This document shows positions 1 to 26,383 of a stretch of DNA of 32,906 nt, in pieces; the first letter of the stretch is position 1; each line of letters begins with the position of its first letter. Position numbers and translations under genes: made by a program. Below the pieces are notes generated by a model. It searched no databases, had not been told where the DNA came from, and saw nothing but the letters and a program-made list of their open reading frames with translations. Source of the stretch: Octopus bimaculoides (Eukaryota); assembly GCF_001194135.2 (NCBI RefSeq), contig NC_069001.1, forward strand, positions 19,025,006 to 19,057,911. Reading direction: 5' to 3'.

Positions 1-19
1 AATTGTGGGGTATGAGTTG

Positions 20-200
20 ATCTATATATAGCGTTAAGAGGGCTCCCAGATGGCTTCAGAATTTTACTCTATCACGTGACCTTATTAGGGGCCGTGATTG
101 GTCAGTTTGCGTTCTGGCGGGAAAGGTTCGAAGAAGTTGCCGATTCGAATAATGATCGTCACGTGATGACAAGGAATGGGTTCTCTACTACGCTCGCATT
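20..200. promoter_or_regulatory. CpG-rich promoter-like patch with two extended E-boxes and an inverted CCAAT box
   Basis: About 12 CpGs in the first 200 bp of otherwise CpG-poor DNA; ATCACGTGAC at 71-80, its reverse complement GTCACGTGAT at 158-167, ATTGG at 97-101. No transcript evidence. Confidence 0.45.
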
Positions 201-328
201 TATTTATATTTAAATGAGAAGAATGGTGATAGCAGTTTTGTATCTAATGGTGGTAGGTAGTTTCACTACATATATATTATATGCCGGCCACTGCTTTAAT
301 TGTTTTATCCTTTATTATTATTAAATAG

Positions 329-364
329 GGAGAGCATGCTAATAGTGAAGGATTATCAATCCAG
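329..364 (+). CDS. Candidate upstream 36-nt exon of the C1orf21 homolog (xESMLIVKDYQS + split R)
   Basis: T-rich tract ending TAG at 326-328; donor CAG|GTAAAA after 364; the 2-nt overhang AG joins the first G of exon 6245 to give AGG (Arg) in the conserved frame; in-frame ATG at 336. No recognised homology for this segment. Confidence 0.3.
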
Positions 365-531
365 GTAAAATACTTCATAAGCTCTCTGTTGGCACACCAG
401 GCTAACAATATTGTTTTGAATAGTGAAGAACTTCAAGTATTCTTATGGTAGAGTGCAAGGTTATGGTTCATCACAATTCTATATTGTAAATCCGCAGTTG
501 GGTTCCAGACAAACTGGTTTTTAGAGAGTGA

Positions 532-746
532 TATATAAGACCAGTTGTAGATAATGGTCTTTACATATTTTTTCCTTTATTAGAGCAAATTTGGCTTACA
601 ATTGTTTCCAGTAGTCATTATAGGTATGTTACTGACAGGTTTACTCAATTGGTCTGTTGATCAGTTAAGAAAAATTGAATGACCTAAAAAAATTAATGAT
701 ACTTTCGTTGGAGCCATTTCTGGTTATAACAAAGCAGAACACTGAA
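532..746 (+). repeat. Left arm of ~215-bp inverted repeat (partner 4265-4479)
   Basis: Hand alignment to the reverse complement of 4265-4479 gives roughly 90% identity. Confidence 0.92.
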
Positions 747-1011
747 GGAATGTTGAGTGTAGGATAGGGAGGAAAAGATGGGAAAATACAAGTAGAATAT
801 AGAAAAGGAGAAAGACAGGTTACAAAGGGGCGAAGAGAAGTAATGAAAGGATAGAGGAAGGGGTCACTTAACAGAAGCAGAGGTATAGGATGACCAAGAT
901 TTGGAAAAAGGACAGTCATAAACATTAATGTTTGTAATTAGCTCAACACAGATGAACATATTAGCATTGTTTTTAGGTTAGATATTCTCCAAATGTTGTA
1001 ATGTTATTATC

Positions 1012-1437
1012 AGTTTTGAATATGCCAGTGGCACATTCTAACTTGTAAACAAGCCTTTCACTGTGTTTTGCCATGAAAAAAATTTCTCACTGTAGACAAA
1101 TCATGTAAATACACCTACATCAGCTCACAACACTGCCTATCCAGACTGTGAGATGCAAGCATTTTGAAGTGGTTATCTCCTCTTCAGTCACAGAAACCAT
1201 ATGGTGGCACTGCGAGCAGTTAAGAGGGACAATTTATTTTATGCTATTCCAGTTATTGTAGATCGGTTGGGAGCACTAATCAATAGCTCACAGTAAACAA
1301 ATTATGGGCTGGGAGCACTAAGCAGTGATACGTATAAATGCAATGTTATTACCAGTTCAAATATGCCAGTGGCGCGTTCGAATTTGCAAATAAGCCAATT
1401 TCTTGCTGTAGACAAATGGTGTAAATACACCTAAATC
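1012..1437 (+). repeat. Diverged direct repeat pair (~1012-1131 and ~1352-1437)
   Basis: Both contain ATATGCCAGTGGC...CTGTAGACAAAT..TGTAAATACACCTA; the second copy lacks ~30 nt. Confidence 0.75.
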
Positions 1438-2795
1438 TCCCAATGTTGTGTTCAAATTTGATATGGGCCATTTATACACATGGTCAACCTAAGTCTTTAA
1501 TATTTGGTCATTGCTATCAACCATAGTAGGGGAATTGTATTAGAAGATGAATGAAATATCAGTAGTAATCATATTGTGCTGTAGAGGTCAAGAAAGCTCT
1601 GATTAGCTAGGATATAAAATACTGATTGATTGAGAGATGTGAGGTTGAAATGAGATAGAGTCAAGTTGAGTTGTTGAAATTAACCTCATTACATGAGTTT
1701 TAAAATTTAAACCATTAATTAAATTACGGATTAAAATTTGAACTAAAGTTAAAAATTTCTAAATTTAGCATTAAAGCAAACTAAAGATTAAAAGAATTAA
1801 AACAATAATGATGATGATGATGATGACAACATCAACAACACCAATAGCAATAATATTAAACATCTTGCAAATGGACAGAGATTTAGAGACGTATTACTCG
1901 AAGCCTTTGACGAAATAGAAAGGGATATAGCTTTACACAATGTGGAAGACAACTGGAGGTTTCTACAGAACAACCTGCTGAGGGTCACTGACCAGATCTG
2001 TGGATGGTGCAAAGTCCCCTCTCGACCCAAGATAACGTGGTGGTGAAACAATGTTGTTGGCAGGGCTATTAGAGAAAAGAAACAGGCTTGGAAGGACTGG
2101 AAGAACGGTGGTAGCAGGGAATTGTATCAGACTGCCAGAAGGGAAGCTAGGTGATAGGTTTATTTAGCCAGAGGGGAAGCAGATAAGAAAAAATTTGCCA
2201 ATGTTCTGCAGGAGAAATACCTAGCCAAAGATAAACCTCTGTACTTGGCTTTTGTTGACATGGAGAAAGCCTTTGACAGGGTCTCCCAATCCCTTATCTG
2301 GTAGTCAATGAGGAAACTAGGGATAGATGAATGGTTAGTGAGAGCTGTGCAAGCCATGTACAGGGACACTGTCAGTTAGGTGAGGGTTGGCAACGAGTAC
2401 TGTGAAGAATTCCGGGTAGAGGTAGGGGTCCACCAAGGTCCAGTTCTCAGTCTCCTCCTATTTATCATAGTCCTCCAGGCAATAACAGAGGAATTCAAGA
2501 CAGGATGCCCCTGGGAGCTCCTCTATGCTGATGACATTGCACTAATTGCTGAGTCACTATCAGAACTAGAAGAGAAGTTTCAGGTGTGGAAGCAAGGATT
2601 AGAATCGAAGGGCTTTAGAGTCAACCTAGCTAAAACCAAAGTCCCAATAAGTAGGAAGGCAGACAAACCACAAACCCCTTCAGGTAGATGGCCCTGCACG
2701 ATATGTAGAAAAGGTGTAGGTAGAAACTCCATAAGATGTACCCAGTGTAAGCTATGGACACATAAGAGGTGCAACAATATCAAAGGAAGGCTAAC

Positions 2796-2869
2796 TGGGA
2801 AGATAGTTTTTGTATGTGGCTGGGAAGATAGTTTTTGTATTGTTAACTGGAAAGATAGTTTTTGTATTG
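2796..2869 (+). repeat. Three tandem ~26-bp copies (TGGGAAGATAGTTTTTGTAT) inside the LINE ORF
   Basis: Units start at 2796, 2821 and 2848. Confidence 0.9.
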
Positions 2870-3631
2870 CTCAGGAACAATAAACACTGAAAATGTGCAG
2901 AGAACAACTTCTGCCACATTCCAGGGAGAAAAACTGGAAGTACTTGATAGCTTCCATTACCTAGGTGACCAAGTCATTAGTGGGGGTGGCTGCTCTGAAA
3001 GTGTAGCTGCTAGAATAAGAACAGAGAACTCTTACCTCTGCTGGTGACAAAGTAAAAGGCAGACTGTATGACGCATGTGTATGAACAGCCATGCTACATG
3101 GCAGTGAAATATGGGTGGTGACTGCTGAGGACATGCGTAAGCTCGCAAGGAATGAAGCCAGTATGCTCCGCTAGGTGTGTAATGTCAGTGTGCATATTCA
3201 ACAGAGTGTAAGTACCTTGAGAGAAAAGTTGGACCTAAGAAACATCAGATGTGGTGTGCATGAGAGATGACTGCACTGGTATGATCATGTGGTGAGAATG
3301 GATGAGGATAGCTGTGTGAAAAATTGCCACACCCTAGCAGTTGAGGGAACATGTGGAAGAGGTAGACCCAGGAAGACATGGGATGAGGTGGTGAAGCACA
3401 ACCTTTAAACATTAGGCCTCACCAAGGCAGTGACTAGTGACCGAAACCTTTAGCAATATACTGTGCTTGAGAAGACCTAGCAAGCCAAGTGAGACCATAA
3501 CCTGTGGCCTATGCTAGTGGTGTGACCATCCCACTTATGCGTACCTTTCCTTCATTGGACACTAAACTCTGCTTACAAAGACCTGTTGAGGCAAGTGAAA
3601 TCGAAATCAAATTCGATGACAGCACTGCATG

Positions 3632-3950
3632 ACTGGCATCCGTGCTAGTGGAGCGCTAAGAGCACCATCTGAGTGTGATCATTGCTAGAGTAGCTGACTG
3701 GCTTCTGTGCTGGTGGCACGTAAAAAGCACCATTCGAGCGGGATCGTTACCAGTGTTGCCTTACTGGCTTTTGTTCCAGTGGGATGTGAAAAAATATTCG
3801 AGCAAGGTTGTTGCCAGTGCCGCTGGACTGGGTGCTATGCAGGTGGCATGTAAAAACACCATTTGAGCGCAACCGTTGCCAGTACCGCCTACTGGCCCTC
3901 GTGCCGATAGCACATAAAAGCACCCATTACACTTTTGAAGTGGTTCGCTT
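3632..3950 (+). repeat. Five diverged ~65-bp tandem units in the LINE 3' UTR
   Basis: ACTGG-initiated units at 3632, 3697, 3763, 3827 and 3891, most with GTG...GGCA.GTAAAA.GCACC. Confidence 0.85.
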
Positions 3951-4031
3951 TAGGAAGGGCATCCAGCTGTAGAAACTCTGCCAGATCAGATTGGAGCCTG
4001 GTGTAGCCATCTGGTTCACCAGTCCTCAGTC

Positions 4032-4041
4032 NNNNNNNNNN
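4032..4041. other. Assembly gap (10 N) with duplicated flanks
   Basis: 4003-4031 is identical to 4042-4070. Confidence 0.95.
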
Positions 4042-4264
4042 GTAGCCATCTGGTTCACCAGTCCTCAGTCAAATTGTCCAACCTATGCCAGCATGGAAAG
4101 CGGACGTTAAACAATGATGATGATGAGGAGGATTAATAAAATAATAATATAAAATAAGAAAAAAAATAATAATGATGTAATAATAAAACAACACTAAAGA
4201 GGTAAAAAAATAACAACAGTAATGAAATAAAAAGGAAAATTAAAAATTTAAAAAATGAAAAGAT

Positions 4265-4479
4265 TTCAGTGTTCTGCTTTGTTATAACCAGAAATGGCTC
4301 TGATGAAAGTAGCATTAATTTTTTTAGGTCGTTCAATTTTTCTCAACCAATCAATAGACTGATTGAGTAAACCTATCAGTAACATACCTATAATGACTAC
4401 TGGAAACAGTTGTGAGCCAAATTTGCTCTAATAAAGTTTAAATATGTAATGACCATTATCTACAACTTGTCTTATATAT
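4265..4479 (-). repeat. Right arm of ~215-bp inverted repeat (partner 532-746)
   Basis: Reverse complement matches 532-746; outer ends lie in TATA runs. Confidence 0.92.
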
Positions 4480-4682
4480 AAATACAGAAACACATGCATG
4501 CATGCATACATACATACAAACAAACAAGTAAAGCATATAAAAGATATATACAAAATTCGTAGGATGTAGCAGGATGATATACACAAATTAAATAAGTGTG
4601 TGTGTGTATGGCATATAGTTACATAAAATCTGCATGGAAGATTTTATATACAAGTTATACAGCAAGTTAGGTGGAGAGTCTA

Positions 4683-5962
4683 CAGGGAGTCAACAAATTT
4701 TTTCACACACTGCAAGCACCTATTGCATATATTGATATAGACTATGTGACATTATTTTTTTGGATGGACATAATAGAATGCTTACTTTAACATCACCTTG
4801 GACAACCCTTTCAAACTTTTTTATGCAAATTTTCTAGTGCAAAGGCAGCATGCAGTTCTCCAATATAATCATTATCCTTCAAGAAATCTTTCTTGAGAAA
4901 AAAATTTTTTTTTATGGGGGATGAAAATGCATTCAAAGGAAGAGAGAAGAAAAGTAGCTGTTGATTTGAAGATTTCAAAGTCTACAGTGGAATATATGTT
5001 TAAAAATGACTATAACTAGAAGAAAGGAGGAAAGAAAAAGTCACTTGGGAAGAAAACTCAAAGGTGAATGAAGATGACTGTATCATATGTACTGGCAGCT
5101 GGAAGAAAGGCAATAGCATGGAACATGAAGGAGAAATGCAAAATAGCTGTAAATATTCGAACAGTTTAAAGAATGCTGAAAGAAATTGGATACAAGTATG
5201 GAAAGGCCATGAGGAAAAAGCGAAATACATAAGGCATGGTTAGACTGCAAAATTGTGGTTAACTACTCCTGTTGATTTTACCGAAGTAATTTTTACTGAT
5301 GAGAAGTGATTTAAGGCTGATGGACTCAACAGCTGGTGCTCTTGGTCAAGGAAAGATGAACCGGTGATGCTGAACAAAAACCAGATGAGCAGAGGTGGTA
5401 TGTAATGGTATGGAGCAGGGTTAGGAGTGACTGGAAGGAAGACAGAACAGCATGAATTACATCCAGTTGTTAAAAAACAAGAGAAGAAATAGCAGATAAT
5501 TTTATTTTATCCTCTAATAAAATACCTGCAGCATTCACAAGTCAAAAACAGTCAAAGAATGGAAGCAAGATGTGAAAATAAGTCTACTGGACTGGCTAGG
5601 AAATGTCACAGTTTGTCTAGTGAGGCAGAATTATGGAAATGGACTTTAGGAGCCTAGAGAAACAAAAAGAGATGTTATGATGAAAAATGTTTGTGTGGTA
5701 TAACGAACAAATATTGCAAGTGATTGAAAAGAAAGACAAGTGTGTGGACTACTAACTGAAGCTGAGTTGTAATGTCTGAAAAATATTGTCGGATGATTTT
5801 ATTAAAATTTTTATAAAACACCACTTAAACGTTTGCATACATGCTCAGGGAGTGCAATCACAACAAGAATATTATGAATACATCTACATTGTTTTATTCT
5901 AAAAGTGTGTTTATCGTTAAGTGTCTGTAAGCAGGTGTCTGGAAAAATGTATCAACCCTCTG
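4683..5962 (+). mobile_element. Ancient full-length Tc1-like transposon, transposase heavily degraded
   Basis: TA flanks at 4681-82 and 5963-64; degenerate TIRs (21/29 matches counting the TA; CAGGGAGTCAAC.. vs CAGAGGGTTGAT..); remnants LKISKSTV, VIFTDEK*FKADG, VKEWKQDVKISLLDW; 1280 bp. Confidence 0.7.
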
Positions 5963-5964
5963 TA

Positions 5965-6150
5965 TAGGAATCACATAGAAGGTAGAGGGAGAGTCTTTAG
6001 GAATCACATAGAAGGGAGAGGAAGAACTTAAGAGTTAAATAGAAGGGAAAAGAGAGTTTATATGAGTCATGTAGAAAGTAGAGGGAGATTGTTGGCATCC
6101 CATAGAAGGGAGAGTCTATAGGAGTTGTGTAGAAGATAGAAAGATGATGT
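5965..6150 (+). repeat. Degenerate purine-rich ~30-bp minisatellite
   Basis: Recurring AGGAATCACATAGAAGG-like units. Confidence 0.7.
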
Positions 6151-6244
6151 ATATTCTCCAGCACTTTTAAGCCATTTCCTGTTATATAATTCCAATCTAT
6201 TGTCCAGTTAACCATGAACCAATAATATTTTGATTATATTTCAG

Positions 6245-6299
6245 GATTACACGTAGTCAATTGGAATTTTTTAGAATGTTAGATGAAAAAATTGCTCAG
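6245..6299 (+). CDS. C1orf21: Penultimate coding exon of C1orf21/DUF4612 homolog (x-ITRSQLEFFRMLDEKIAQ)
   Basis: Acceptor TTATATTTCAG at 6244, donor CAG|GTGAGT at 6300; 1+54 nt; matches recalled human ISESQQEFFRMLDEKIEK; splices in frame to 15618. Confidence 0.92.
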
Positions 6300-6910
6300 G
6301 TGAGTTGATCTAGGTTTTTTGTTTGCTTTCTTTTATAATTTTGTTTTAATATTGAATTAGTGAGGTTGAGTTAGTGAATATTGTTGTTCAGCCTATATAA
6401 GTGTGTGTATACACACACACATGCAAATTATATATAATATATAGTATATATGTATGTATGTTTTATACACAAACTAAAATAATACATGTATATTATTTAG
6501 CAACAGCAAGAAAGAGGATTCAACATTGGAGCATATTTACATTTGTCCTCTCCCTCTCCCTTTCATGTGTCTTCTCTCTAATTACTTCTATCAAAGCTAT
6601 CATGGAATACACTTGCCCAAAGTTTGGTCCTAGACCATGAGTTTGAGCTACCTTCCTGGGTGAACTGAGTTCCAAGCACAGTTTGGCATTTTTTCCCATT
6701 TAGCCGAACCTCATAAATCTTAATCCCCTTCTCTAGTAGGCATCCGTCAGCCTCAAGTGACAATGGATCTGCACCTGAAGAAACCGTCAGCTGCTGATAG
6801 CAATGCAGCATCTGTTGTGGTTGTATAGGCCCACACATGAATGACTGTCACACAGCGGCTGCATTGGAAGGAGCTCTTTACCGGCACTACTGGTTTTTCC
6901 TTCCTTCGAG

Positions 6911-7027
6911 GAAACTCTGCCAAATCAGATTGGAGCCTGGTGTAACCATCTGGTTTCACCAGTCCTCAGTCAAATCGTCCAATCCATGCTAACATGGAAA
7001 GCGGACGTTAAACGACGATGATGATGA
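6911..7027 (+). mobile_element. RTE/SINE 3' tail fragment with (GAT)n
   Basis: Near-identical to ~3972-4125. Confidence 0.9.
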
Positions 7028-10000
7028 GTGGCAAGTTCCTGTTTTCCTTCTGCTCACTTCATCCCCTTTCACAGTATTTGTCTCCAGTGTAGGTGATCAT
7101 TTACAACCTCCTCCCATCTCAGGACATTTAGATCAAGCAATTTCATATTCCTCTTACAGACGTCCTTGAAGCAAAGATGAGGTCATTCTCATGCTCTTGT
7201 GCTGGTAGCCAATTCCCCATACAGGAGATCTTTTGGGATCTTCCCATCCAGCAAGCAATGTGCATGACAGCCAGTGCAGATAATGCTGCTGGAGCAGGGT
7301 GAATATGTTAGCTATCTTGGCGTAGTTGAGGACTTCAGTCTGAATGCTGGTGTTTTGCACTATCTACTTGATATCCAAGATGCATCTCAAATTACGAAGT
7401 GGAAGACGTTGAGATACTGCTCCTGTCTGGAGTAGAGGCTCCATGCCTCACTGCCATAAAGTCGCATACTAAGGATGCACACCTTATAGACAGCAATCTT
7501 GGTGTTTACAGCCAGTTCTCTGTTTTCCCAGATTCTCTTTGTGAGCCTGGAAAATGTGGAGGATGCTTTTCCAATTCGCCTGTTGATCTTAGGGTCTAGG
7601 GAGAGGTTGTCAGCGATGGTACAGCTGAGGTAGGTGAATTCATGCACTACTCTAGCTTGTAGTTGTTGATGGTGGGCCAGTACTTTGGTCTTCTTCATAC
7701 AGATAGTCAGGCTGAATTCCTGACAGGCTTTGAAAGTTTATCCACAAGGTGTTGCATTTGCTCCCCAGAGTGCGCTGTCAGTGCTGCATCATCCGCAAAC
7801 AGCATTTCTCTGATGAGTACCTGGCACACTCTGGATTTTGCTTTCGCTTTCGACAGACTAAACAGTTTACTGTTTGATTTGGTATGAAGGTAAACACCAT
7901 CAGTTGATGTCCCAAATGCATGTTTCAGCATGACTGCAAAGAAGATGCCAAACAGGCTGGGGACAAGCACACAGCCCTGCTACATGCCTCTACATATGTT
8001 GAACGTCTCTGAAGAAGAGCCATCAAATTGAATGATGCCTTTCATATCCGTGTGAAATGATTGGACAATCTTGAGTCTTGGAGGACAGCCAATCTTGGCA
8101 AGGATTTTGAACTGGCTGTCTCTACTGACTAGGTCAAAAACCTTTGTGCCTTTGCTCTCAGCACATCTCTTGATGATGGTGGAGCATTCTGATCTGAAAC
8201 CACACTGAGATTCAGGGTATACCCTCTCAGCAATTTTCTGTAGTCTGCTTAGGACTACATGGACCTTCCGGATGATACTTAACAGTGAGATACCTTGGTA
8301 ATTATTGCAGTCCCTTTTGTCCCATTTGTTCTTATATAGGGTGACAATGTTGCAGTCTCTCATGTCTTGTGGTACTGATCCCTCCTCCCAGCACTGACAC
8401 ACTAGTTTCAGCAAGTGGATGAGTAGAACTCTCCTTGCACATCTAATGATCTCTGGTGGGATGCCATCCAAACCTGGTGCTTTTCCTGTGGGCAAGCTGT
8501 CGATGGCTCTGCTCAGTTTTTCAGCAGTTGGCTCCATGAGAGGTAGGTGTTCAACGTTGTCTAGTGCACTATCCAAGATGTTTTCCTTGGCATAGAGTTT
8601 GGAATAATGTTCCACCCATCTCTCCAGCTGCTCTCTTTTACTTTTGATGACTTCCACTGTTCTGGATTTGAGTGGAACTATCTTGCTCTGAGTTGGGCTG
8701 ATGGCTTTCTTGATACCCTCGTACATTCAGCAAATGTTGCCCATGTCAAATAACAGTTGGATATCTACATATAATTGTTACTAGGATTCATTTGCACACC
8801 ATCTCACTGTCTTCTGCTTGTTCTTCCTTGCTGATCTCAATGCTTGCAACATTTTTCTTCCATGAGGGTATTGAGCTCCTTCACACTCACCTCAAACTAG
8901 TCTTGTGGCATTTTCCCCTTCCTCTCAATGCTGTAGATGATGTCCCTGAGAGTCTCATCTCTGCTGAACATTGCTTTCCAGTGGGTCTGCAAGGAGGGTG
9001 TCTTCCAGTGTCTTAAGGAATGCATCTTAGTTGGCTGTTGGGTTGCAGTAGCATTGATGTGCTGCTTGCCTGGGGGCTTGGCACAGTGCATCATTTTTAG
9101 CTATAATTTGAGATTGCAGCAAACCAAGGAGTGGTCTGTGTCACAGTCAGTGCTCTGAAAAGACTGAGTTAGAACATTCCTCAGGTGGTTTCATCTTGTG
9201 GTGATCAGATCTAGCTGCTGCCAGTGCCCTGAGTGAGGGTGATGCCAAGAGGCCCTGTGTTGAGCTTTGGCATGGAAGAAGGTGTTGGTGACACATAGTC
9301 CATGGAGCATGCAGAGCTCAAGCAGCCGTTACCCATTTTCATTCATCTTGTCAAACCTGTACCGACCTAGACACACTGTCCAGGAGTTGTGATGAGCTCC
9401 CACTCTGGCGTTGAAATCACCAAGTAGCACCAGCTGTTCTCTAAATGGGGTACCTTGTATTTTCCTAGAAACTGATCATAGAACTTATCCTTGACATCTT
9501 GTGTGGAGTAGAGGGTTGGAGCATAAGCACTGAGGCTGACAAACCCCTCAGAAGTGTGCAATTGAAGTGAGAGTATCTGCTCCAAACCGTAGCTGCTGAG
9601 TTCTACCAGCTCCAGCAGAGAGTTTTTCACAGCAAAGCCAACACCATGCTCTCTGACTTCATGTATGCCTTTCCCTTGCCAGGAAAAAGTATGTTCTCTT
9701 TCACGAAGGGTCCTTGAATCTGGGAGCCTCGTTTCCTATGGTTGATCACTGCTTTCTTGCATGTGTCACTGATCTTTTGAAGGTCCTCTGACAGACCAGT
9801 TGTCATAATTTTTATGTTCCAACATTCGAGTCTGAATGCTGGTGTTTTGCGTTATTTGTTGTTTTTTTTTCTTGATGCAGTGTTCTGTGCTCACTCGTGG
9901 GTTTCGTCTTTTTTTTTTTTTAGCCCATGATTGGGGATATTAGATTTGCTAAGCCCCACACACCTAACTAACTGGGTGCTGCCCAGCTTGAGGTTGGTGG

Positions 10001-10410
10001 TAGCTGTCCAGTGAGGTACAATGACCTCTCCTCCTGTCAAATGCAGACCCTGGCATGTTGCTCTTACATCAATTATGTGCAGGCTTAAAACCGGTAGACT
10101 ACTGCTTTCCATGTTTTACCGCCATTGTTAGACAGCACTGGAGTCTCCTCTCCAGGGTGCTGACCTGGACAGTTTTTCCATGGAGATCAACAGTTACCCA
10201 TGCAGCACGTTTCCCCTCTCCACCGCCACTAATGTTATCCATGGGAAGGGTAAGAATCAATACGATTTGACACCAGTAGGGCTGCAGGAGTTGCTAGAGC
10301 AAGATTGTTTATAGCATCAAACTACCTTAAGGACTCTGGCTCCGGATTTATCCTCAGGGTTTACTCCTGAAGCTTTTCCCTTAAGTGGGCGTTACTGCAA
10401 GGCAGCAGAG
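7028..10410 (-). mobile_element. Near full-length decayed RTE (BovB-like) LINE, antisense in the last C1orf21 intron
   Basis: Minus strand: 5' UTR ~9880-10410; APE (CWNIKIM, SAYAPT..KDKFYDQ, MNENG*RLLELC, DCDTDH); RT (KAPGLDGIPPE, YQGISLLS, PESQCGFR, MLFADD, LYGSEAW); C-terminus CFKDVCKRNMK; multiple stops and frameshifts. Confidence 0.95.
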
Positions 10411-10964
10411 TTGTTATTATTGCTGTTGTCTTAAGTGGGTAAGGGCTTAATAGGCAGCACAGCTAATAATGAGTTGCTTATTTGGATGGCTGTTGACTCT
10501 TCATAGTTCATTCACCCTTTGACAGGTCTTGTATTAAATCCTGCAGGGTGACCAAATAGCAAGAAAAGCACCCTCCTTACAAAGCAAGTTCTGTGGTGTT
10601 GCCGGTTAGTTGCTGACAGCCTGGCACCTGTGATTCGATGATTGGAAAGAAAGAGACAGTGGGAGGAGAGAAAAATTTTAAAAAGGTGGGTACAGTGAGG
10701 GAACACAACGGACTTAAACAGTAGTTTTAGTTATAGATGAGAGGCTTAAATCTACCAAAGGGCAGCGTGGGAGTTAATGCTGTTTATTATTAGGATTATT
10801 TTATTCTATTTTTGGGTAGTTGCAGTAAACACAAGTTGTTTGGTTGATCTGGTAGTGTTAGGGGACAGGTGGAAGAAGTTACAGGAAGAACAAGAGCAAG
10901 CTGGAAGATATCGTTATCTAGGCAGCAAGAAAAAAAGAGAAAACAGCATGTTTTCTCCAAAAGA

Positions 10965-11304
10965 AGACCACCGGTTAATGTTTACAATATTACCCAGAAA
11001 TGGAAAAAAAAATAATAGTGCAACAGGTGTAAAAAAAAATGTGTAGGAAATGAAAATGAAAAAAACACGTGCAGAAAGCAATGGAGGGAGGGGGAGAGGA
11101 CTTCGGAAAATTCAAAAGATCCAAATTTTTCCCTCATAACTTTTAGGAAAATGTTTTTTTTTTTTCAAATGGCATAGATTACGATTATAAAGAAATTTGT
11201 GGGTAAAATCTTTTCCGAAGGGGTGGGGAGAGAACTTTGGAAAATTCACAAGATCCAATTTTTTCCGTCATAACTTTAAGGGAAATGGATATCTTTGAAT
11301 GAAA

Positions 11305-11341
<37 letters not shown>

Positions 11342-12147
11342 AAACGGCTATGGATGCCTGTTCCGCAAACCCCTTATTTTTGTTCGGAAAAAGGTGTTGG
11401 TGGGGAGAAACCAGAATTGTTAGAAAATGCTTCTCTTTTTCTAATGAATGAATTATGGTGACCTAATATGCCATAATCTGCAATCTGGGATTAATATATC
11501 AAGTGATTTTAAAAAGGTATGTAAAAGATATTTTGTTTTTATATTATAATTTTATTTGTTTCACACACACACAAACACTAACGTGGTTTTTGTAAGGATT
11601 TTGTTCATTCTTTCTCTTCTATCCAGACTTCGTGACCACTAATTTTTACAACTTCAGCATTTTCGCTTATTATTCTTTTCAAACTTGTTTGGATTTTCAC
11701 TCTAGAAAAGGTATTTCTGCAAAATGTTATCTTAAAAAATATGGGCAAAGAAAAGGGTCAGTATAAAGACCTTCACCCAGGAACAAAAAAAGGCAAGACT
11801 TCCACCCGTCCCCCACCTTTCGGCTATGGGGAATACGAATCTGCAAAAAAATTGGCAAAAATCGACATTTCTAAATTACCACCTCCACCCCCATTTTTTT
11901 TTTTTATAAATATGCGGAAAAATACGAACATCCTCAAAGTTATGGGTGAAAACCTCGGATCTTGTGAATTTTCCGAAGTCCTCTCCCCACCCCCATTGCT
12001 TTCCGCACATTTTTTTTTATATTCGTTTCCTACACATTTTTTTACACTGTTATTATTATTTTTTTTTTTTTGCACTATTATTTTTTTATTTTTTTTATTT
12101 TCGTCTCTGGGTAATATTGTAAACATTAAACCGGCCACGCTCGGTCT
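10965..12147. mobile_element. Non-autonomous foldback/MITE-like element with ~180-200-bp inverted arms and an internal sub-repeat
   Basis: 10971-11148 matches the reverse complement of ~11927-12134; 11221-11280 is a direct copy of ~11090-11146; (TA)n at ~11306-11335; no coding capacity. Confidence 0.75.
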
Positions 12148-12949
12148 GCAAGAAACAACTTAGACGTATTGCTATGTTAGAAATAGAATCAATCTAACGA
12201 AGGGAAAAAAAGAGCAAACTTACTGTTGAAAAGTTTCAAAGTCCGTCTCTAAGGTCCATAGAAAGAAACTAATATAATTTAGCTGTCACAGTTTACCCTA
12301 TCCTATTGATGATAGCTATTACTTCCACTTCACATAGCGTCAACTATTATTTATAAAAAGCTGAAGACCGTTCAGGTTGTCTCCCTTATCAACAGGATAC
12401 AAGAATTACCTCCCTCTGATAGAAAAAAATTTATTTTTTTTTCGCCAATAAATTTCACCGCGTTCGCTCCATTTGCTAGAAATAGTAGCCAGGTTGTAAT
12501 GTGACATCTACAATATACGTTTAATGATGTAATCTAAGAAACACTTTTGATAATAGAGTCTGTTTTGGGCTAGACAAAATAATTGTTTTAATTTTGTTTT
12601 TATAGAATTATTTAAAATATTATTTTGACTTATAAGAATTTATTTTAGTTATTTTAGCTTTGACTTCATTTGTTTTGGCACCTCCATCTCTACCATCTTT
12701 AGCCTTCCTACTTATTCCCACCTATCACATATATAATATGGTGTAACCATACATCTCATCCATAGCATGATACTACACTTGCCCCTCTCTCATTCTTTAG
12801 CCTTTGAACACTCAGTATAAAACCACATTCCCCTCTAAAATATTCCCCATAGATGCTCTTAGTAGCAGAAAGTTTTTCCTTTTCCATTTTCTCTCTCCCT
12901 TATTCTGTCTTGTAACTTGACATTAGAGCTTGATGCTGCTCGAATGGAT

Positions 12950-13012
12950 TGCTAGATCATTTCAAACAGTCCAACTTATACCAGCATGGAAAACGAATGT
13001 TAAATGATGATG
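12950..13012 (+). mobile_element. Short RTE/SINE tail fragment
   Basis: GTCCAAC..ATACCAGCATGGAAAACGAATGTTAAATGATGATG. Confidence 0.75.
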
Positions 13013-13044
13013 TATTTTATTCTGAAATGATAAGAAATTATGGC

Positions 13045-13487
13045 AGAATTCTGCTTTATGCACAGCATACAACTCCTTCAAATTTTTTTATTTTTTGGAA
13101 TTTTCAGAAAATATTTGGGAATTTGTGTTCTACACATGGGAATTCATACAACTATGAAAAAAAATTATTTTTTTGATTTTTCAAAATTAAAAAAAAAATT
13201 TTTCCAGGCATTTTTCTTTTAAATCACAGTTTAAAATACAGGCTTCTGGAGAGAATGATATTGAAAAAAATCGATACGTCAGAGTGACAGACAAGGAGGG
13301 TGGTTGTGAGATGTGCTAAGAATAACAGCTTAAATCACACATAAAAAAAAATTTCTCTTTTTGTTTGGGTTTTTGCATAATTGTATGAATTCCCATGTGT
13401 AGAATACAAATTTGCAAAAAAAATTCTGAAAATTCCAAAAATAAAGAAATTATGAGGGGTTATATACCATTTGTAAAGCAGAATTCT
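13045..13487. mobile_element. MITE-like element with ~120-bp terminal inverted repeats
   Basis: AGAATTCTGCTTTA...CTACACATGGGAATTCATACAA (13045-~13160) is inverted at ~13372-13487; no clear TSD. Confidence 0.8.
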
Positions 13488-13698
13488 TATATATAAAATT
13501 ATTATCTCTTTATATGTTTACTCATGGCCTCAGAAAAATTCCACATTTTATAAGTTGTGATTTTTTTATTCCAAAAGTTATGCTTCTTCTTAATATTGTT
13601 TATTGTCATAAAGATTTTTCAATAAATTGAAGTTGTTAAAAAAATAAGGTTTTGTTAACTTATAGTAGTGGTCCCCAACTTCTTTTCCTAAATCTTGT

Positions 13699-13880
13699 CA
13701 TCATCATTTAATGTCCATTGCATGGGTTGAACAGTTTGACCAGAACTGGCAAGCTGGAGAACTGCACCAGGTTCCAGTTTCATTCGACATGGCTTCTACA
13801 GCTGGATGCCCTTCCTAACACCAACCATTTCAAGAGTGTAATGGGTGCTTTTACAAGTATTTATACATGGCACTGGCACA
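13699..13880 (-). mobile_element. RTE/SINE tail copy, minus strand
   Basis: (TCA)n followed by CTACAGCTGGATGCCCTTCCTAA and GTAATGGGTGCTTTT, the reverse complement of ~3915-3972. Confidence 0.85.
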
Positions 13881-14307
13881 GGAATCTTGGGGGGCCATTC
13901 CTTTTCCCTCAAATGGCCTTAACACTTCTACTGTGGAGTATGGGTCTTAGGTAATGCTTCATAAATTTTCATACTCAATACAAAAGTTATAACACATTTT
14001 ATAAGATGAAAAGAAAGTCAATTTTCCTTTTTTAATTGAACCACGGACAGTAGTGTGCTTTAATATATTCAACTGTTTTTATATATTGAACTCAGTTTAT
14101 AAACTAGAAACATTAATTTAGCAATTACAAAAACTGTCACTGGTGACAATTGTGTACACAGATACATTAAATCTACATTTGTTGAATAGTAGAATTGTTG
14201 ATGGGTTTTATAGAAGAAAGTTACTTTCAATCATTCAGAATTTATCCTGGAAGGTGAGTTTAATAAAGTTTATACATACACATACAAATGGATGTTTGTT
14301 TATTTGT

Positions 14308-14514
14308 TTGAGGTCCCTGAAGGCCCTGGTAATCCTGGCCCTCAGCTCATCCTTTGTGTCGCTGCTGGATTTGTTGGTTTTTCATTCCACTGTGTCCCAC
14401 ACATAGAAGCAGTCAAGTGAGTTGGGATGCCAAATATTAGGTGCTGTGTGATTGAAGAAATTCTCCGACAGCCAGGTCCACGTCTTCTGGCTGGTGTGAC
14501 AGGGCACTGAGTCT
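14308..14514 (-). mobile_element. maT-like (IS630-Tc1-mariner) transposase C-terminal fragment
   Basis: DSVPCHTSQKTWTWLSENFFNHTAPNIWHPNSLDCFYVWDTVE*KTNKSSSDTKDELRARITRAF, similar in pattern to 25964-26305. Confidence 0.8.
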
Positions 14515-14650
14515 CACCTTATTGACAGTACTTGTTGGATTAGAAAGCTCTCACAAGCCATTTGTCTATTCTTAGCTTTCTTAATGACCACCAGATCATA
14601 GAGCAAGAGATCTTGTTGAAAATTTCTCCAGATTAACAAATATATTATAA

Positions 14651-14790
14651 GTGCAGAAATGGCTATGGTTGAGAAGTTTACATGTGGTTTTAGGTTTAGT
14701 CCCACTGCGTGGTACTACTACTACAGCTCCAGGTCAGCCAAAGCCTTGTGAGTGGATTTGGTAGATGAAAAGTGAAAAGAGACTATCATA
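14651..14790 (+). mobile_element. tRNA-derived SINE fragment (cephalopod-type)
   Basis: GGTTTAGTCCCACTGCGTGG...CCAAAGCCTTGTGAGTGGATTTGGTAGA, recognised as an abundant Octopus SINE; related to 17332-17470. Confidence 0.7.
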
Positions 14791-15617
14791 TGTATTGTAA
14801 TAAGAGTGAAATTCTGTCTGTCTGTCTGGGACCTCTGTATCTCAGTCTTCATTTGTTCTACATAGACATATTTTACCTTTTTGGAAACAGGATGATCCCG
14901 AGATTGAAGATCTTCCCTTCATTTGGTTCTTGAATATCTGATTTAAAAGCATTTGGGTTGCTATTTCTAGCAGGTAAAGTTTGGCTGACATAACATCTTG
15001 ATTGGCCTTTGTCAGAGATCGAGGGGGAAATAAATGACATTCACTTTGTTAATTTTACTTCAAGATAAGAACTTTGGGACAAATTGACCAACAGTTGGAA
15101 TTCAAATTTGAACTGGAACAATAGAATGATTGCATTACAGAATTAATTCTCATCTGTCCTTAACCTCTGATCAAACCCCAATGGGGCATATAGTCATGCT
15201 ATTTAACTTTCTTTAGTTTGGCGCTGCTGGCCCAATCAGCCCTCTGCAGGAGATAGCTTAAAAGTCCACATGGAGTGTGTCCTTTAAGCTAGGATGTAAT
15301 ATGTGTGTGTCTGTGCCTGTGTTCACAATCACTTGTACAAAAGTAGAGCAATTGGTATTGTCAGTTTCTCTTCAAACAAAACTGCCAGGCACTTTGTATC
15401 TATGTGGATTAAGTGATCCCTTACTTGAAAAACTGGTCAGGAAGAGCATCTGGCTGTAAAATATAATGTGTACCCAACATTCTATGTCTGCATTTGTATT
15501 CATGCATGGTAAAATAAATGGCAGTAAATGAATGTATGTGTGTGTGTGCGTGCACACGCACACACTTTATATATATGTATATATATTTTGATGTTTTTCT
15601 ATTTTTCTCTGTTTCAG

Positions 15618-15650
15618 GGCAAAGATTACTGCTCTGAAGAGGAAACGTAG
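15618..15650 (+). CDS. C1orf21: Terminal coding exon of C1orf21/DUF4612 homolog (GKDYCSEEET*)
   Basis: Strong acceptor TTTTTCTCTGTTTCAG at 15617; phase 0; matches recalled human GRDYCSEEEDIT; TAG at 15648-15650. Confidence 0.92.
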   Translation, partial: GKDYCSEEET

Positions 15651-16825
15651 CAGATGTCCAGTGGGTGACTAGCACAGGCTTTATGTGGGTTCCCTTTCTG
15701 ATGGCACTTCCAAATCAAAACAAAACAAAACAATCATTTTAAACAACAACAGTAATAATTATAGTAATAACAACAACAACAACTACATTCAAAAAGAAGA
15801 AACACAAAGACTGGAGACAACTAAAAGCCCATCCAATATTCAGCCAGCATTCAGTTCGACCCTACCTATGACAGAGCTTTCATATCTCTCTTTGACTTTT
15901 ACATTGCCATCTGCAATACCAATAGCTTTAAAAGCTTGCTCGTAACAATTTAATCATGATGATGATGATAATGATGATATTGACAATAATAAGGAATTAT
16001 AGTAATTTAAGTGTTATACACTCACATACATATATGTCCATATATGCATGTGTGTGTGTCTATATTCATATATGTATGTGTGTGTGTATAGATATATATA
16101 TAAACACACATATAGCCACTTTAAACATACAAGCCAACAAACAAAAAAAATCCAAACAATATTCTCTTTCGTCAATATAATTCTACAGGAGTGATGTTAG
16201 CACCAGCATTATCATTGTCATCACCATCATCCCCACCACACATACACACACCCGCACATATACACTACTGTACTCTCAATACCACACCATACATTTCTTG
16301 AATAAAACAACAAAACTTTTAAAAGAATTGTGAAAATTGTTAAAAATTGAATTCTCCCAATTTAAAAGGAAAGAAACTTAGGAAGAGAACAAAGTAAAAG
16401 TGAAGAAAAGAATAAAGAAATAAGAAAGAAAGAATGAATGAAGGAAAATAGAATGACAGAAAGGAAAGAAGAAAGAGTGTAGAAGAGATTTTCTATTTAA
16501 AGCCAACATTTTCACAAATATTATGAATGAAAAACTGAAGCAAGAAGAAATTCTTCGTGTCTGCTACCCTGATTTTATATGTCTAAAAGAATTCTTTGAG
16601 ACTGTTCTAACTCTTTGCTGCCATAGTTTACCAAAAAGACGTGCAATATATATTCTTTGAAAGTTTCTAACCCTAACCCTTCACCTGAAACAAATCTAAA
16701 AGCAACAAAATTTCTTGTGTTTTTTTTTTTTTTATTTTGTTATTTCCTTTTTTACCTCCTCTTCATATCATCACCACTACCACTACTCCACTACTACTAT
16801 TATTCACCTTCATCTACAGATTGGG

Positions 16826-17020
16826 GGAAGTCTTTGTGTGGCCTGTTGACATGCTAGAAACAAGTAGTCAAGTACCTTCCTTAAACCCTACCTTTACCCA
16901 ATTGTCTTAAATAAACATAAACATTAGACAAAGTTGGTCCCTGAAACTTTAAATGGGATGGTTTTGATCATAGATATACTCAATCAGGACTGACCTGCCC
17001 GTGGTTATACAATAACAGCA
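16826..17020 (+). repeat. Octopus-type dispersed repeat (..TGCTAGAAA..GGATGGT..CTGACC..)
   Basis: Related pieces at ~12474-12500, ~14955-14978 (minus) and 22805-22945; family recognised from memory. Confidence 0.55.
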
Positions 17021-17331
17021 ACATTTTTACTCCATTTCTCTGACTTACTGTTTTAATTAGGTTGAAATAAATTCCAACCTAAAACACTGGAACTTAACAC
17101 GTCACATCCTCCAGGGGCCACCACCACTCTCATCTTCATTCCATCCTTTCATCATCTGGACCATTCCCCCGCATCAACCTCTTTTCTTAATTGAACATAT
17201 TTTCTTTTTCTATTTGCTTGTTGTTATAAATCTTTAAAAGTTGTTTGTCTTACTCCCTTTGACATTTTCTCCTTGTGCCATTCCTTTTCTTTGATCTCAA
17301 ACCACATCACATTGATAACTCTAGCATATTA

Positions 17332-17470
17332 CTAGGTGCACGCAGCGCTGCAGGCTTCAGAAGTTTGAGACCATGTGGTTTCTGGTTCAATCCCACTGCA
17401 TGGCAAATGTCTTTTCCTACAGTTTCGTTGAGTGAAATTTTGAGACTTTACTGGAGCTTGTCATATATGT
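17332..17470 (+). mobile_element. tRNA-derived SINE head fragment
   Basis: B-box-like GGTTCAATCC at 17384-17393 followed by CACTGCATGGCA. Confidence 0.6.
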
Positions 17471-18104
17471 GTATGCTTGTTTGCATGTGTGTGTTTGTTT
17501 TCATTTTTCCTACTCACCACTGGGGCAGTGTTTCTGTTCTGCTGCTGCTGTTATTCCAAGTGTGGCAATCCCAATGGAATAAAGTAGCTGACTTGAAACA
17601 AGTGTGGAATGGCACCAACAGTGGCAAGTTTTGTACACTCCATGCCATCTTGGGAAAGCAAGGATGATGAATGTGTATGTGTGTACGATAATGAACATGA
17701 TATGATGTATGATATGTATGTGATGATGAATATCATATGGTATAACAGACAAAAATCATTCACCCATCAACCACTCACTTTTTCAAAACAAAAATCCCCA
17801 TTAAAAAAGAAATAAATTTATTTATTTAAGATCTCACGTAAACCTGTGTTGAAATTATTTGGGGAAGAAGAAAGACACACACAGACACACAGAAACATCA
17901 CTTTTTTGCTTTTTTTTAACTATTTTTTTAAAATTGAGGTAAAAATGTTAAAAGATTTCAAAAAATAATTTTAAAAAATAGATAAAAAGAGAAAGTTTAT
18001 TGCATGAATGAGAGATAATTAGAAAGAAATAATTGAGATGTTAAAAAGAACAATAACATAAAATGAAGGGGCTGGTGTGATTTTTTTTTTTTTTTTTTTT
18101 TTTT

Positions 18105-18316
18105 NNNNNNNNNNNNNNNNNNNNNNNNNNNNNNNNNNNNNNNNNNNNNNNNNNNNNNNNNNNNNNNNNNNNNNNNNNNNNNNNNNNNNNNNNNNNNNNN
18201 NNNNNNNNNNNNNNNNNNNNNNNNNNNNNNNNNNNNNNNNNNNNNNNNNNNNNNNNNNNNNNNNNNNNNNNNNNNNNNNNNNNNNNNNNNNNNNNNNNNN
18301 NNNNNNNNNNNNNNNN
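18105..18316. other. Assembly gap
   Basis: Run of N after poly-T. Confidence 1.
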
Positions 18317-21071: not shown

Positions 21072-21223
21072 CAACTTTCCTATATTCATTCCTGGGAATA
21101 CACTTCTTTTCTCCATATGTGTGTGTGTGTAATATTAATGCAGTCTGGAAAATGGTTAAGATCAGAGGGAAAATATAAAGAACATAGAAATTGGGGGGGA
21201 TGATTAAAAAATTTTTTAATTTT

Positions 21224-21954
21224 NNNNNNNNNNNNNNNNNNNNNNNNNNNNNNNNNNNNNNNNNNNNNNNNNNNNNNNNNNNNNNNNNNNNNNNNNNNNN
21301 NNNNNNNNNNNNNNNNNNNNNNNNNNNNNNNNNNNNNNNNNNNNNNNNNNNNNNNNNNNNNNNNNNNNNNNNNNNNNNNNNNNNNNNNNNNNNNNNNNNN
21401 NNNNNNNNNNNNNNNNNNNNNNNNNNNNNNNNNNNNNNNNNNNNNNNNNNNNNNNNNNNNNNNNNNNNNNNNNNNNNNNNNNNNNNNNNNNNNNNNNNNN
21501 NNNNNNNNNNNNNNNNNNNNNNNNNNNNNNNNNNNNNNNNNNNNNNNNNNNNNNNNNNNNNNNNNNNNNNNNNNNNNNNNNNNNNNNNNNNNNNNNNNNN
21601 NNNNNNNNNNNNNNNNNNNNNNNNNNNNNNNNNNNNNNNNNNNNNNNNNNNNNNNNNNNNNNNNNNNNNNNNNNNNNNNNNNNNNNNNNNNNNNNNNNNN
21701 NNNNNNNNNNNNNNNNNNNNNNNNNNNNNNNNNNNNNNNNNNNNNNNNNNNNNNNNNNNNNNNNNNNNNNNNNNNNNNNNNNNNNNNNNNNNNNNNNNNN
21801 NNNNNNNNNNNNNNNNNNNNNNNNNNNNNNNNNNNNNNNNNNNNNNNNNNNNNNNNNNNNNNNNNNNNNNNNNNNNNNNNNNNNNNNNNNNNNNNNNNNN
21901 NNNNNNNNNNNNNNNNNNNNNNNNNNNNNNNNNNNNNNNNNNNNNNNNNNNNNN
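21224..21954. other. Assembly gap
   Basis: Run of N. Confidence 1.
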
Positions 21955-22468
21955 TTTTTTTTTTTTTTTTTTGCTTTTATTTCCAATATTTTTGCAGTGA
22001 TATATATTTTACAACTTCTCACAGTAAGACATTTTTCCAGAACTTTTCATGGTATTTTTCCCAACACCTTTCATAGTGAGTTTTTATAAGACTTTTTGCA
22101 GTGGATTTCTTCCTTGCCCCAACACTTTCCACAGTAGGTCTTCATTTTATAAAGTATATCACAGTGGGTATCTTCTTTTTCCATTTGTTATTTTCTTGTT
22201 GTACTTTAATATTTGATTAAATTTAGTGTTTCTAAAAGACAAAAGTATACTTGGAGATCAAATACTTAATTTTTAGTGAGATTCTCTCATTAAAGAGCAA
22301 TAATTTTTAAGATAAGTAAAATTTGAGTGAGGCAGTAAAAGTCCTCTTTAGAGGTAACACCTTAAGGAAATACAAACCTGTTGTTTAGGGAGTATCAGGG
22401 ACCAAGCTAAAACTTTTTAGGGAGTATTATCAAGTAATATGATAAATATTCTTATTACTCTTATTCAT

Positions 22469-22602
22469 TTTCTGAGTTCAAATCCTGCCAAGATCAGCTT
22501 TGCCTTTCATCCTTCCAGGGTTGATGAAATAAAGTACCAGTCAAATACTGAGGTTTGTATAAAACTGATAACAACTCTCCAAAACTTGTGGCTCTGTGCC
22601 TC

Positions 22603-22633
<31 letters not shown>

Positions 22634-22640
22634 TATTATT
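22469..22640 (+). mobile_element. tRNA-derived SINE (5'-truncated) with (ATT)n tail
   Basis: B-box GTTCAAATCC at 22476-22485; central CTTTGCCTTTCATCCTTCCAGGGTTGATGAAATAAAGTACCAG block; ATT tail. Confidence 0.85.
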
Positions 22641-22804
22641 GCTGTTGTTAATAATGAATCTTTCTTTAATGTTCTCAGCCATGACTTGCCAAGAGCAATA
22701 TTTAATTAAGAGGGACACAACTCAGAACATAATTATTAATTACTCCAAACTATTTAAATTGCATCAACAACGAGGTAACAAACCGCATGGTTGCTTGACT
22801 TGCT

Positions 22805-22945
22805 GCTAAAAATAGCTGTCAAATCCCCCTCAGACCACCTGCTTAGAGAAGGGGAACACATTCAGTAATAAATTCCTGGGTGGGGCATACTATGCCTAGC
22901 AAAAAGACAGGATGGTCATAGCTGAAATACCTGAGACTTACTGAA
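22805..22945 (+). repeat. Dispersed repeat related to 16826-17020
   Basis: TGCTAAAAATAGC..CAAATCCCCCTCA..AAAAAGACAGGATGGTCATAGCTG. Confidence 0.55.
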
Positions 22946-25320: not shown

Positions 25321-26383
25321 CAAGATGTAAGGAGTATGTGAGGACACATAATTATCAGTATATTACTCTCTACGAACCAGTTAAAAAGATTTTGTTTCTT
25401 TGAGATCTCCCATGGCAGATAAAATGCTAACACAAAAAATGAAGAGATTTGCAATCAACGTTGCTGTATGGGTGGAACACAGTGACTTGTACACTGCCAA
25501 CTTTGTAAAATATTACAAGTACTTTTGTACACAAAATCTCTGGTGGGAAGGTTTCAACTGTATCCAAAAGACAAAAAGATGTCATAATTGTTTAGACACT
25601 ATAAGGACACCACAGGTTCAAAATGTTATCTGAAAATCAAAGAGAGCCCTTTTGGTGTTGGAGTGGACTATCAGAACTATGATGCACAAGGATGTTTGAT
25701 ACATGTCATATGTGTTGAAGTGAAGCTAATTTATGCCCGCAAAGACGCAGGAAAACCATTTAAACCATACCAAGCAGTTCATTAGCAAAGTTAAAAGCCT
25801 TCACAAACATGGCATGCTTTGGTTTTTCTCTAATGAAAAAAATTCTATCAGGAGAAATGACAGATGGTTAAATGCAGTTCCTTTTAATGGCTTTAGGAAT
25901 AGTGAGTTATGAAGGTCATATGCCATTTCATCTTTCCATAGGATTCCTGAATATGTTGAGGTATTGGTAACAGCTCTTAAGCTCTGGGTGGAAAGTCAAC
26001 AAGACTCAGCACCTTTTCGCAAATCCCACATAACCCAAGAATGGATGTCAGGTGACCTTTATGATTGTCTGACACCAAACTTGTGCCCTCCAAGCTCACC
26101 AGATTTAAATCTCAAGGACTACTACATTTGGGGCATTGTTGAAAGGGACACTAATCAGCATCCTCACAATAACATAGCTTCATTGAAGGTTGCCATTGTC
26201 CAGGTGATGTATGAAATGAATAAGGGTCATTTAGTACAGGTATGCCAACGATTCTGGCCCTGCATTGAGGCAGTCATCAAAGCTGATCGTGGACTCCTTG
26301 AATAATTTCATAAGAATGTTTATCTAGAACATGTATGCTTTTTTTATTAAATTACCATGCCCTCAAATACCTCTTGCATCCTG
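25321..26383 (+). mobile_element. maT-family (DD37D) transposon, internally deleted
   Basis: TA flanks 25319-20 and 26384-85; TIRs CAAGATGTAAGGAGTATGTGAGG / CAGGATGCAAGAGGTATTTGAGG; N-terminus MADKMLTQKMKRFAI; FFSNEKN; QQDSAP...SPDLNLKDYY with 37 residues between the Ds. Confidence 0.9.

Follow-up and report, generated by a model that had tools for sequence, protein, structure and literature searches.

A window of 32,906 nt from Octopus bimaculoides (RefSeq assembly GCF_001194135.2, contig NC_069001.1, positions 19,025,006 to 19,057,911 of the forward strand) contains, at 6245-6299 and 15618-15650, the final two of the five coding exons that make up the Octopus orthologue of vertebrate C1orf21, a protein of the family DUF4612. 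Here, "the window" refers to this whole stretch of DNA, and coordinates are counted from its first letter. We hold this assignment with very high confidence. RefSeq/GenBank already list this gene for several Octopus species, including O. bimaculoides (LOC106873104) and O. sinensis (LOC115222888), and NCBI labels it only as "uncharacterized protein LOC...". The two exons and the elements that adjoin them are as follows.

6228-6244, + strand: 3' splice acceptor of the upstream intron (ttttgattatatttcag), the same in O. vulgaris and O. sinensis.
6245-6299, + strand: penultimate coding exon, 55 nt, encoding (K)ITRSQLEFFRMLDEKIAQ, with tatatttcag before it and gtgagt after it.
6300-15617, + strand: last intron, 9318 nt, phase 0, with a GTGAGT donor and a pyrimidine tract and CAG acceptor.
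15618-15650, + strand: last coding exon segment, 30 nt plus TAG, encoding GKDYCSEEET and the stop, the putative helix cap and acidic tail.
15633-15635, + strand: TCT codon of the tail phospho-acceptor Ser, homologous to mouse S115.
15651-18096, + strand: start of the 3' untranslated region and downstream flank, colinear with other Octopus genomes at about 91% identity.

The upstream intron is of phase 2 and splits a Lys codon, to which the preceding exon contributes AA and position 6245 contributes G. With a slash after the base that completes this split codon, 6245-6299 reads G/ATT ACA CGT AGT CAA TTG GAA TTT TTT AGA ATG TTA GAT GAA AAA ATT GCT CAG, and 15618-15650 reads GGC AAA GAT TAC TGC TCT GAA GAG GAA ACG TAG, preceded by a 23-nt pyrimidine-rich tract ending in cag. 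Joined in frame, the two exons encode the 28-aa peptide ITRSQLEFFRMLDEKIAQ/GKDYCSEEET (junction at the slash), with the stop codon 10 residues past the Gly of the conserved motif described below. A microsatellite of (TG)n/(CA)n and (TA)n occupies 15540-15590, about 30 nt 5' of the last-exon acceptor; despite it, the pyrimidine tract and AG are kept in other Octopus genomes. The poly(A) site could not be located by a scan for AATAAA, which occurs at several sites from 16301 on and no more commonly than expected by chance, and an Rfam scan of the window returned no match.

The match is not a matter of chance. Scored against the Pfam DUF4612 hidden Markov model (PF15389; 115 positions, curated gathering cutoff 27 bits), the spliced peptide alone exceeds the cutoff, with 48.5 bits and E=2e-12 over profile positions 89-115 of 115. 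The human C1orf21 sequence used as a query shares 98% identity with a mammalian cluster of 162 members that bears the name "uncharacterized protein C1orf21 homolog", and we consider it validated by this agreement. In a six-frame tblastn search of the whole window with this sequence, both exon sites were the top two matches and no other match was credible. The segments EFFRMLDEKI and DYCSEEE are identical between the window and mammals, and ISESQQEFFRMLDEKIEKGRDYCSEEEDIT is the commonest C-terminal ending among vertebrate matches. Protein relatives were sought with a profile built from 13 vertebrate proteins in an exhaustive scan of 1.84 billion representative proteins. Residues 210-237 of an annotated 237-aa Octopus protein (P0244) match the spliced peptide at 100%; its cluster includes O. 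sinensis XP_029649131.1 (LOC115222888), O. vulgaris CAI9738373.1, and O. bimaculoides XP_014775818.1 / XP_052831547.1 (LOC106873104), together with a longer isoform X1. PF15389 is precomputed on record for the full-length Octopus orthologues.

Evidence for use of the exons comes from transcripts and from constraint. A 1053-nt Logan contig (SRR7548197) from another octopod carries an uninterrupted open reading frame (ORF) for a 238-aa orthologue (P0274) that is 74% identical, and we interpret it as an assembled mRNA because the five exons are contiguous within about 1 kb. Its junction, ...GCTCAG/GG..., is the same as in the window. Over the 88 nt compared, contig and window are separated by 13 synonymous differences, a difference in the split Lys codon, and a single non-synonymous change (E to D). 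O. vulgaris and O. sinensis keep the two exons with all four of their splice sites, and the exons differ from those of the window at only two positions, each synonymous (CAA/CAG and TTA/CTA); the adjacent intron is about 10% divergent. The exons are very short and lie amid transposon debris and assembly gaps, which could suggest a chance alignment or dead pseudo-exons that are not expressed as coding sequence. Against this stand the Pfam score above, a peptide identical to annotated proteins, a spliced transcript contig in a related octopod with a synonymous to non-synonymous ratio of 13:1, and an intron position kept across phyla. We regard this explanation as effectively refuted and its probability as close to nil.

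Only the tail of the gene lies within the window. In O. vulgaris and O. sinensis the coding sequence is divided among five exons (aa ~1-51, 51-196, 197-209, 209-227, and 227-237) that span 14.2 kb and 12.7 kb, respectively. Residues 1-209 of the Octopus protein have no match in the window, and tblastn searches of 1-6244 with the human protein and the Octopus proteins detected no upstream coding exon. By colinearity with O. vulgaris and O. sinensis, the preceding exon (aa ~197-209) is placed about 3 kb upstream of window position 1. The first-pass annotation, made from the letters of the sequence, had described a hidden C1orf21 gene with two canonical exons joining in frame and two segments identical between mollusc and human. 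The exons, the homology, and the identities were borne out by the canonical splice sites, the annotated proteins in three Octopus species, the octopod mRNA contig, the Pfam profile, and the mammalian sequences. The term "hidden" applies to the bacterial-style ORF track, from which both exons are absent, but not to RefSeq/GenBank, in which the gene was already present with its DUF4612 domain; and although the last two coding exons are in the window, the remaining three of the five are outside it.

The position of the last intron is conserved across phyla. A phase-0 intron between ...K-I-x-x and G-x-D-Y occurs in the window (CAG/gtgagt ... cag/GGC), in the gastropod Littorina saxatilis, and in the fish Metynnis. 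In Littorina the penultimate exon is also 55 nt long (C plus 18 codons), with the same upstream-intron phase, and the splice runs from ...GAA AAG/gtgaga to a last exon that begins cag/GGT CAA GAC TAT. In Metynnis the exon ends EKIEK/gt and the last exon encodes GRDYCSEEEDVT. Further, mammalian and avian alternative isoforms split off exactly past EKIEK into V-R/S... ("VR..."), a divergence that fits read-through of a GTRAG donor. An intron at the equivalent K/G position of the human gene, which spans about 209 kb, had been put forward in the first-pass annotation, and for vertebrates it now finds support in the Metynnis genomic exon and in these isoforms. In the tblastn alignment the fish penultimate exon appears to be 61 nt long, versus 55 nt in octopus; its upstream intron lies two codons farther from the motif than in octopus and appears to have the same phase. 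The Metynnis hypsauchen model P0106 (CM115317.1) also contains a tandem duplicate of the exons encoding EKSSAHKTKLHKEVPGANANRA and IHTSESQQEFFRMLDEKIEK (21874-22855 and 27960-29055 in the numbering of the fish locus), by which the helix motif occurs twice in the protein; the source is a genuine segmental duplication or else an error of assembly.

Named members of the family extend from the coral Montipora and the hydrozoan Hydractinia to the brachiopod Lingula, gastropods, amphioxus, Ciona, lampreys, hagfish, and vertebrates, and NCBI already names the coral, hydrozoan, brachiopod, and amphioxus homologues "C1orf21 homolog" or "C1orf21-like". An alignment of 15 sequences, ranging from Cnidaria to mammals, has as its only invariant columns the G of an N-terminal MGC and S213, Q214, F217, F218, L221, K224, I225, G228, and D230 near the C-terminus; the Cys of MGC, D222, and Y231 are nearly invariant. 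The rest of the protein between MGC and the C-terminal motif is an unalignable low-complexity linker. The motif, which lies close to the stop codon, can be written as S-Q-x-[ED]-F-F-x-[ML]-L-[DE]-x-K-I-x-x-G-x-D-[YF]-x-[ST]-[DE], and its tail, after the invariant Gly, as D-[YF]-x-[ST]-[DE]-x-[DE]. The window peptide has this motif with every one of its invariant columns.

Comparison with vertebrate C1orf21, also called PIG13 ("proliferation-inducing protein 13"), shows what is shared and what is not. Both proteins have the MGC, the C-terminal motif, the phase-0 intron, and a stop codon a few residues past the acidic run. However, at 237 aa the octopus protein has about twice the length of the vertebrate one (121 aa), its predicted disordered linker is unrelated and rich in Gln, His, and Ser, and it is missing the middle block that vertebrates conserve (GKNYQNGDVFGDEYRIKPVEEVKYMKNG...NQENLEK). 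Closer to the window, the orthologues in O. bimaculoides, O. sinensis, and O. vulgaris and the homologue in Argonauta hians have the same 28 C-terminal residues and the same exon structure.

Structure prediction gives the chain a single ordered element, which lies within the C-terminal motif. AlphaFold2 was given the octopus protein with the 15-sequence family alignment, and the resulting monomer prediction, which is indicative only, has a mean predicted local distance difference test score (pLDDT) of 52. Its sole secondary structure is a helix at residues 212-226 (RSQLEFFRMLDEKIA), with block means of 96 and 84, and block means are below 60 everywhere before residue 201. The protein is thus predicted to be disordered apart from this helix, and the exon at 6245-6299 to encode the amphipathic helix of the DUF4612 C-terminal motif. 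A search of the PDB with the peptide and the family profile yielded no relative. The tail position that follows the helix is Ser or Thr in about 13 of the 15 family members, and the homologous mouse residue, S115 (the Ser of DYCSEEE), is a phosphosite detected in brain. The first-pass annotation had also suggested a short conserved helix, which the predicted helix supports, and an SEEE run that fits the S-x-x-E consensus of CK2; SEEE is present in the window peptide, and its Ser is the counterpart of the phosphorylated mouse residue.

At its other end, the orthologous Octopus protein begins MLLKGT-MGCGRSK, with the MGC encoded by an exon outside the window. A sequence of the form MGCxxS/K is a signal for N-myristoylation (Gly2, Ser6; the MGxxxS/T rule) and palmitoylation (Cys3). 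The Octopus gene model starts six codons upstream of MGC, and the Kozak context is strong at the MGC Met (ACAATGG) and weak at the annotated upstream Met (TCAATGT). The Octopus start may thus be misannotated, or leaky scanning may occur, and the choice of start codon bears on the predicted myristoylation. Models of Octopus, Argonauta, Lingula, lamprey, and Hydractinia all start a few codons upstream of the conserved MGC.

A possible function for the two exons is suggested by reported partners of the human protein. The only lead found on a binding partner is a compilation that lists CSNK1G1, ESR1, HRAS, MAGEA3, MOV10, PPP2CA, PPP2R1A, PPP2R1B, PPP2R5A, PPP2R5B, and SHMT2 as partners of C1orf21 (PMC10298883, supplement), and the text of the same paper reports enrichment of the Gene Ontology term "dephosphorylation" (PMC10298883). 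PP2A-B56 subunits (C, A, and B56alpha/beta) account for five of the eleven. Because nearly half of a short list thus belongs to one holoenzyme, we tentatively propose, as our best reading of the mechanism but one that may well prove wrong, that the C1orf21 protein is a small disordered lipid-anchored docking adaptor for PP2A-B56, with these two exons encoding the docking element. Under this proposal, myristate on Gly2 and palmitate on Cys3 of the MGC consensus would tether the protein to a membrane, the F-F-(M)L-I face of the amphipathic helix would dock a signalling enzyme, most likely the PP2A-B56 holoenzyme, and the invariant Gly would cap the helix. Phosphorylation of the tail Ser, in its CK2-type S-x-x-E context, could tune PP2A-B56 binding. 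The conserved phase-0 intron separates the coding sequence of the helix exactly from that of the Gly with its acidic tail.

Several observations weigh against this proposal. The PP2A partners come from high-throughput interactome compilations in a secondary source and are human only. Literature searches for C1orf21 with B56, LxxIxE, or PP2A found no searchable paper making the connection, those on DUF4612 and myristoylation found nothing mechanistic, and the supplement of a B56-inhibition proteomics study has no entry for C1orf21. The acylation is read from a consensus, and the octopus gene models begin six codons before the MGC on which it would depend. The motif is also unlike the canonical extended LxxIxE ligand. 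F-R-M-L-D-E provides the sole register, with non-preferred residues at P1 and P4, amphioxus (Branchiostoma) has Gln and Hydractinia has Arg in place of the P6 Glu, and the prediction for the segment is a helix.

The last of these points bear most directly on whether the conserved segment could be a conventional PP2A-B56 motif of the LxxIxE type, with F-R-M-L-D-E bound in extended form in the B56 pocket. The pattern in ELM (DOC_PP2A_B56_1) is L..[IVLWC].E or [LMFYWIC]..I.E and needs Leu at P1 or Ile at P4. In favour of such binding, FRMLDE is identical in octopus and human, the human protein is reported with the A, C, and B56alpha/beta subunits of PP2A, and LxxIxE motifs and C1orf21 both have an acidic, phosphorylatable context beside a hydrophobic core. 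Such peptides are the usual ligands of B56 (PMC8786283), and F at P1 was tolerated by B56 in peptide measurements (PMC8809670). However, the segment has neither Leu at P1 nor Ile at P4, its P6 Glu varies between phyla (the residues that are truly invariant being F-F-L-K-I-G-D), and a confidently predicted helix differs from the extended form in which LxxIxE ligands bind. We consider canonical binding very unlikely. As a candidate for the LxxIxE class the segment was rejected: it has neither the pattern nor a conserved P6 Glu, and residues 212-226 are predicted as a helix (pLDDT 84-96) rather than as disordered or extended. A partnership with PP2A-B56 would then imply a new mode of binding.

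The helix and tail might instead dock another partner or a membrane, the candidates being CK1-gamma (CSNK1G1) or HRAS as partner, AKAP-like anchoring of a kinase regulatory subunit, or a helix lying on the bilayer, with PP2A in the interactome either indirectly or as an enzyme for which C1orf21 is a substrate. CSNK1G1, HRAS, ESR1, MOV10, and others are listed as partners too, and the tail Ser is a phosphosite, on which PP2A could act without being anchored. The architecture also resembles that of the small dual-acylated AKAPs smAKAP (C2orf88) and AKAP18alpha, which are short and mostly disordered and have an N-terminal Gly/Cys lipid anchor and a single enzyme-docking amphipathic helix. This likeness would be one of working and not of sequence, in which the proteins have no known relationship. 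On the other hand, no other single signal is as strong as the five subunits of one holoenzyme on a short list, the spacing of hydrophobic residues in the helix (F, F, +3 M, L, +8 I) is not the PhiPhi-x-x-PhiPhi pattern with which AKAPs bind RI/RII, and the reported partners are PP2A subunits, with no PKA regulatory subunit among them. We judge a different partner or a membrane role to be on the unlikely side. The PP2A-B56 proposal can also be put in a stronger form, in which helix and acidic tail are an undescribed helical, non-LxxIxE PP2A-B56 docking module present from cnidarians to humans, and C1orf21 is a dual-acylated membrane PP2A anchor with a tail-Ser switch; we think it improbable that all of this holds.

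As a genome feature, the find has small value, since the gene and its DUF4612 domain are already on record: it is the unexceptional end of a known gene, set among octopus introns rich in transposons. What still deserves interest is the C-terminal module of human C1orf21, unexplained and shared across Eumetazoa. About 25 residues and the N-terminal MGC are all that has survived since the cnidarian-bilaterian ancestor in this understudied human protein. The predicted helix, the phosphorylated acidic tail, and the reported partners make the PP2A-B56 hypothesis concrete and inexpensive to pursue, and if it were true, C1orf21/DUF4612 might by analogy be for PP2A what smAKAP is for PKA.

The introns around the two exons are larger in the window than in the O. 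vulgaris and O. sinensis orthologues. Colinear non-coding blocks of the window are 88%-92% identical to O. vulgaris and O. sinensis, and the orthologous last intron measures about 3.2 kb in O. sinensis and about 4.9 kb in O. vulgaris, versus 9.3 kb here. The difference is explained by two lineage-specific insertions, listed below with a decayed retrotransposon in the same intron.

8251-12371, no strand assigned: intronic block without a colinear counterpart in O. vulgaris or O. sinensis, from the colinearity comparison.
13265-15405, no strand assigned: second intronic block missing from the orthologous introns, from the same comparison.
7387-8726, - strand: decayed reverse-transcriptase fragment of a non-long-terminal-repeat (non-LTR) retrotransposon, or long interspersed nuclear element (LINE), comprising ORFs 7387-7698 and 7980-8726.

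The LINE fragment has a weak RVT_1 match (E=0.002, under the Pfam cutoff) and is partly common to O. vulgaris; it is an intronic passenger and no part of the gene. A third insertion enlarges the upstream intron: the 4.5-kb block at 1496-5970 is without counterpart in O. vulgaris and O. sinensis, in whose orthologous intron its two flanks abut exactly. Within this block are a non-LTR reverse transcriptase broken by frameshifts and stop codons (RVT_1 E=8e-19), a Cys-rich stretch with weak likeness to PHD, and a gap of 10 N at 4032-4041; the block looks like a lineage-specific LINE insertion.

Downstream of the gene tail, three assembly gaps consist of N runs of 212 (18105-18316), 731 (21224-21954), and 687 (30486-31172). 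These gaps account for very low GC readings and for the long ORFs listed at 21191-22022 and 30405-31259, which are spurious. Translations of 25964-26305 and about 27416-27502 resemble, by eye, C-terminal pieces of a Tc1/mariner transposase (...HQDNAQPHTVRMT...); the resemblance is unconfirmed, and the ORF at 25964-26305 had no Pfam match at E<=0.01. In O. vulgaris, a 116-aa gene without a Pfam match lies downstream of the DUF4612 gene (30181-30531 in the numbering of the O. vulgaris locus), and its colinear place in the window is the N gap at 21224-21954.

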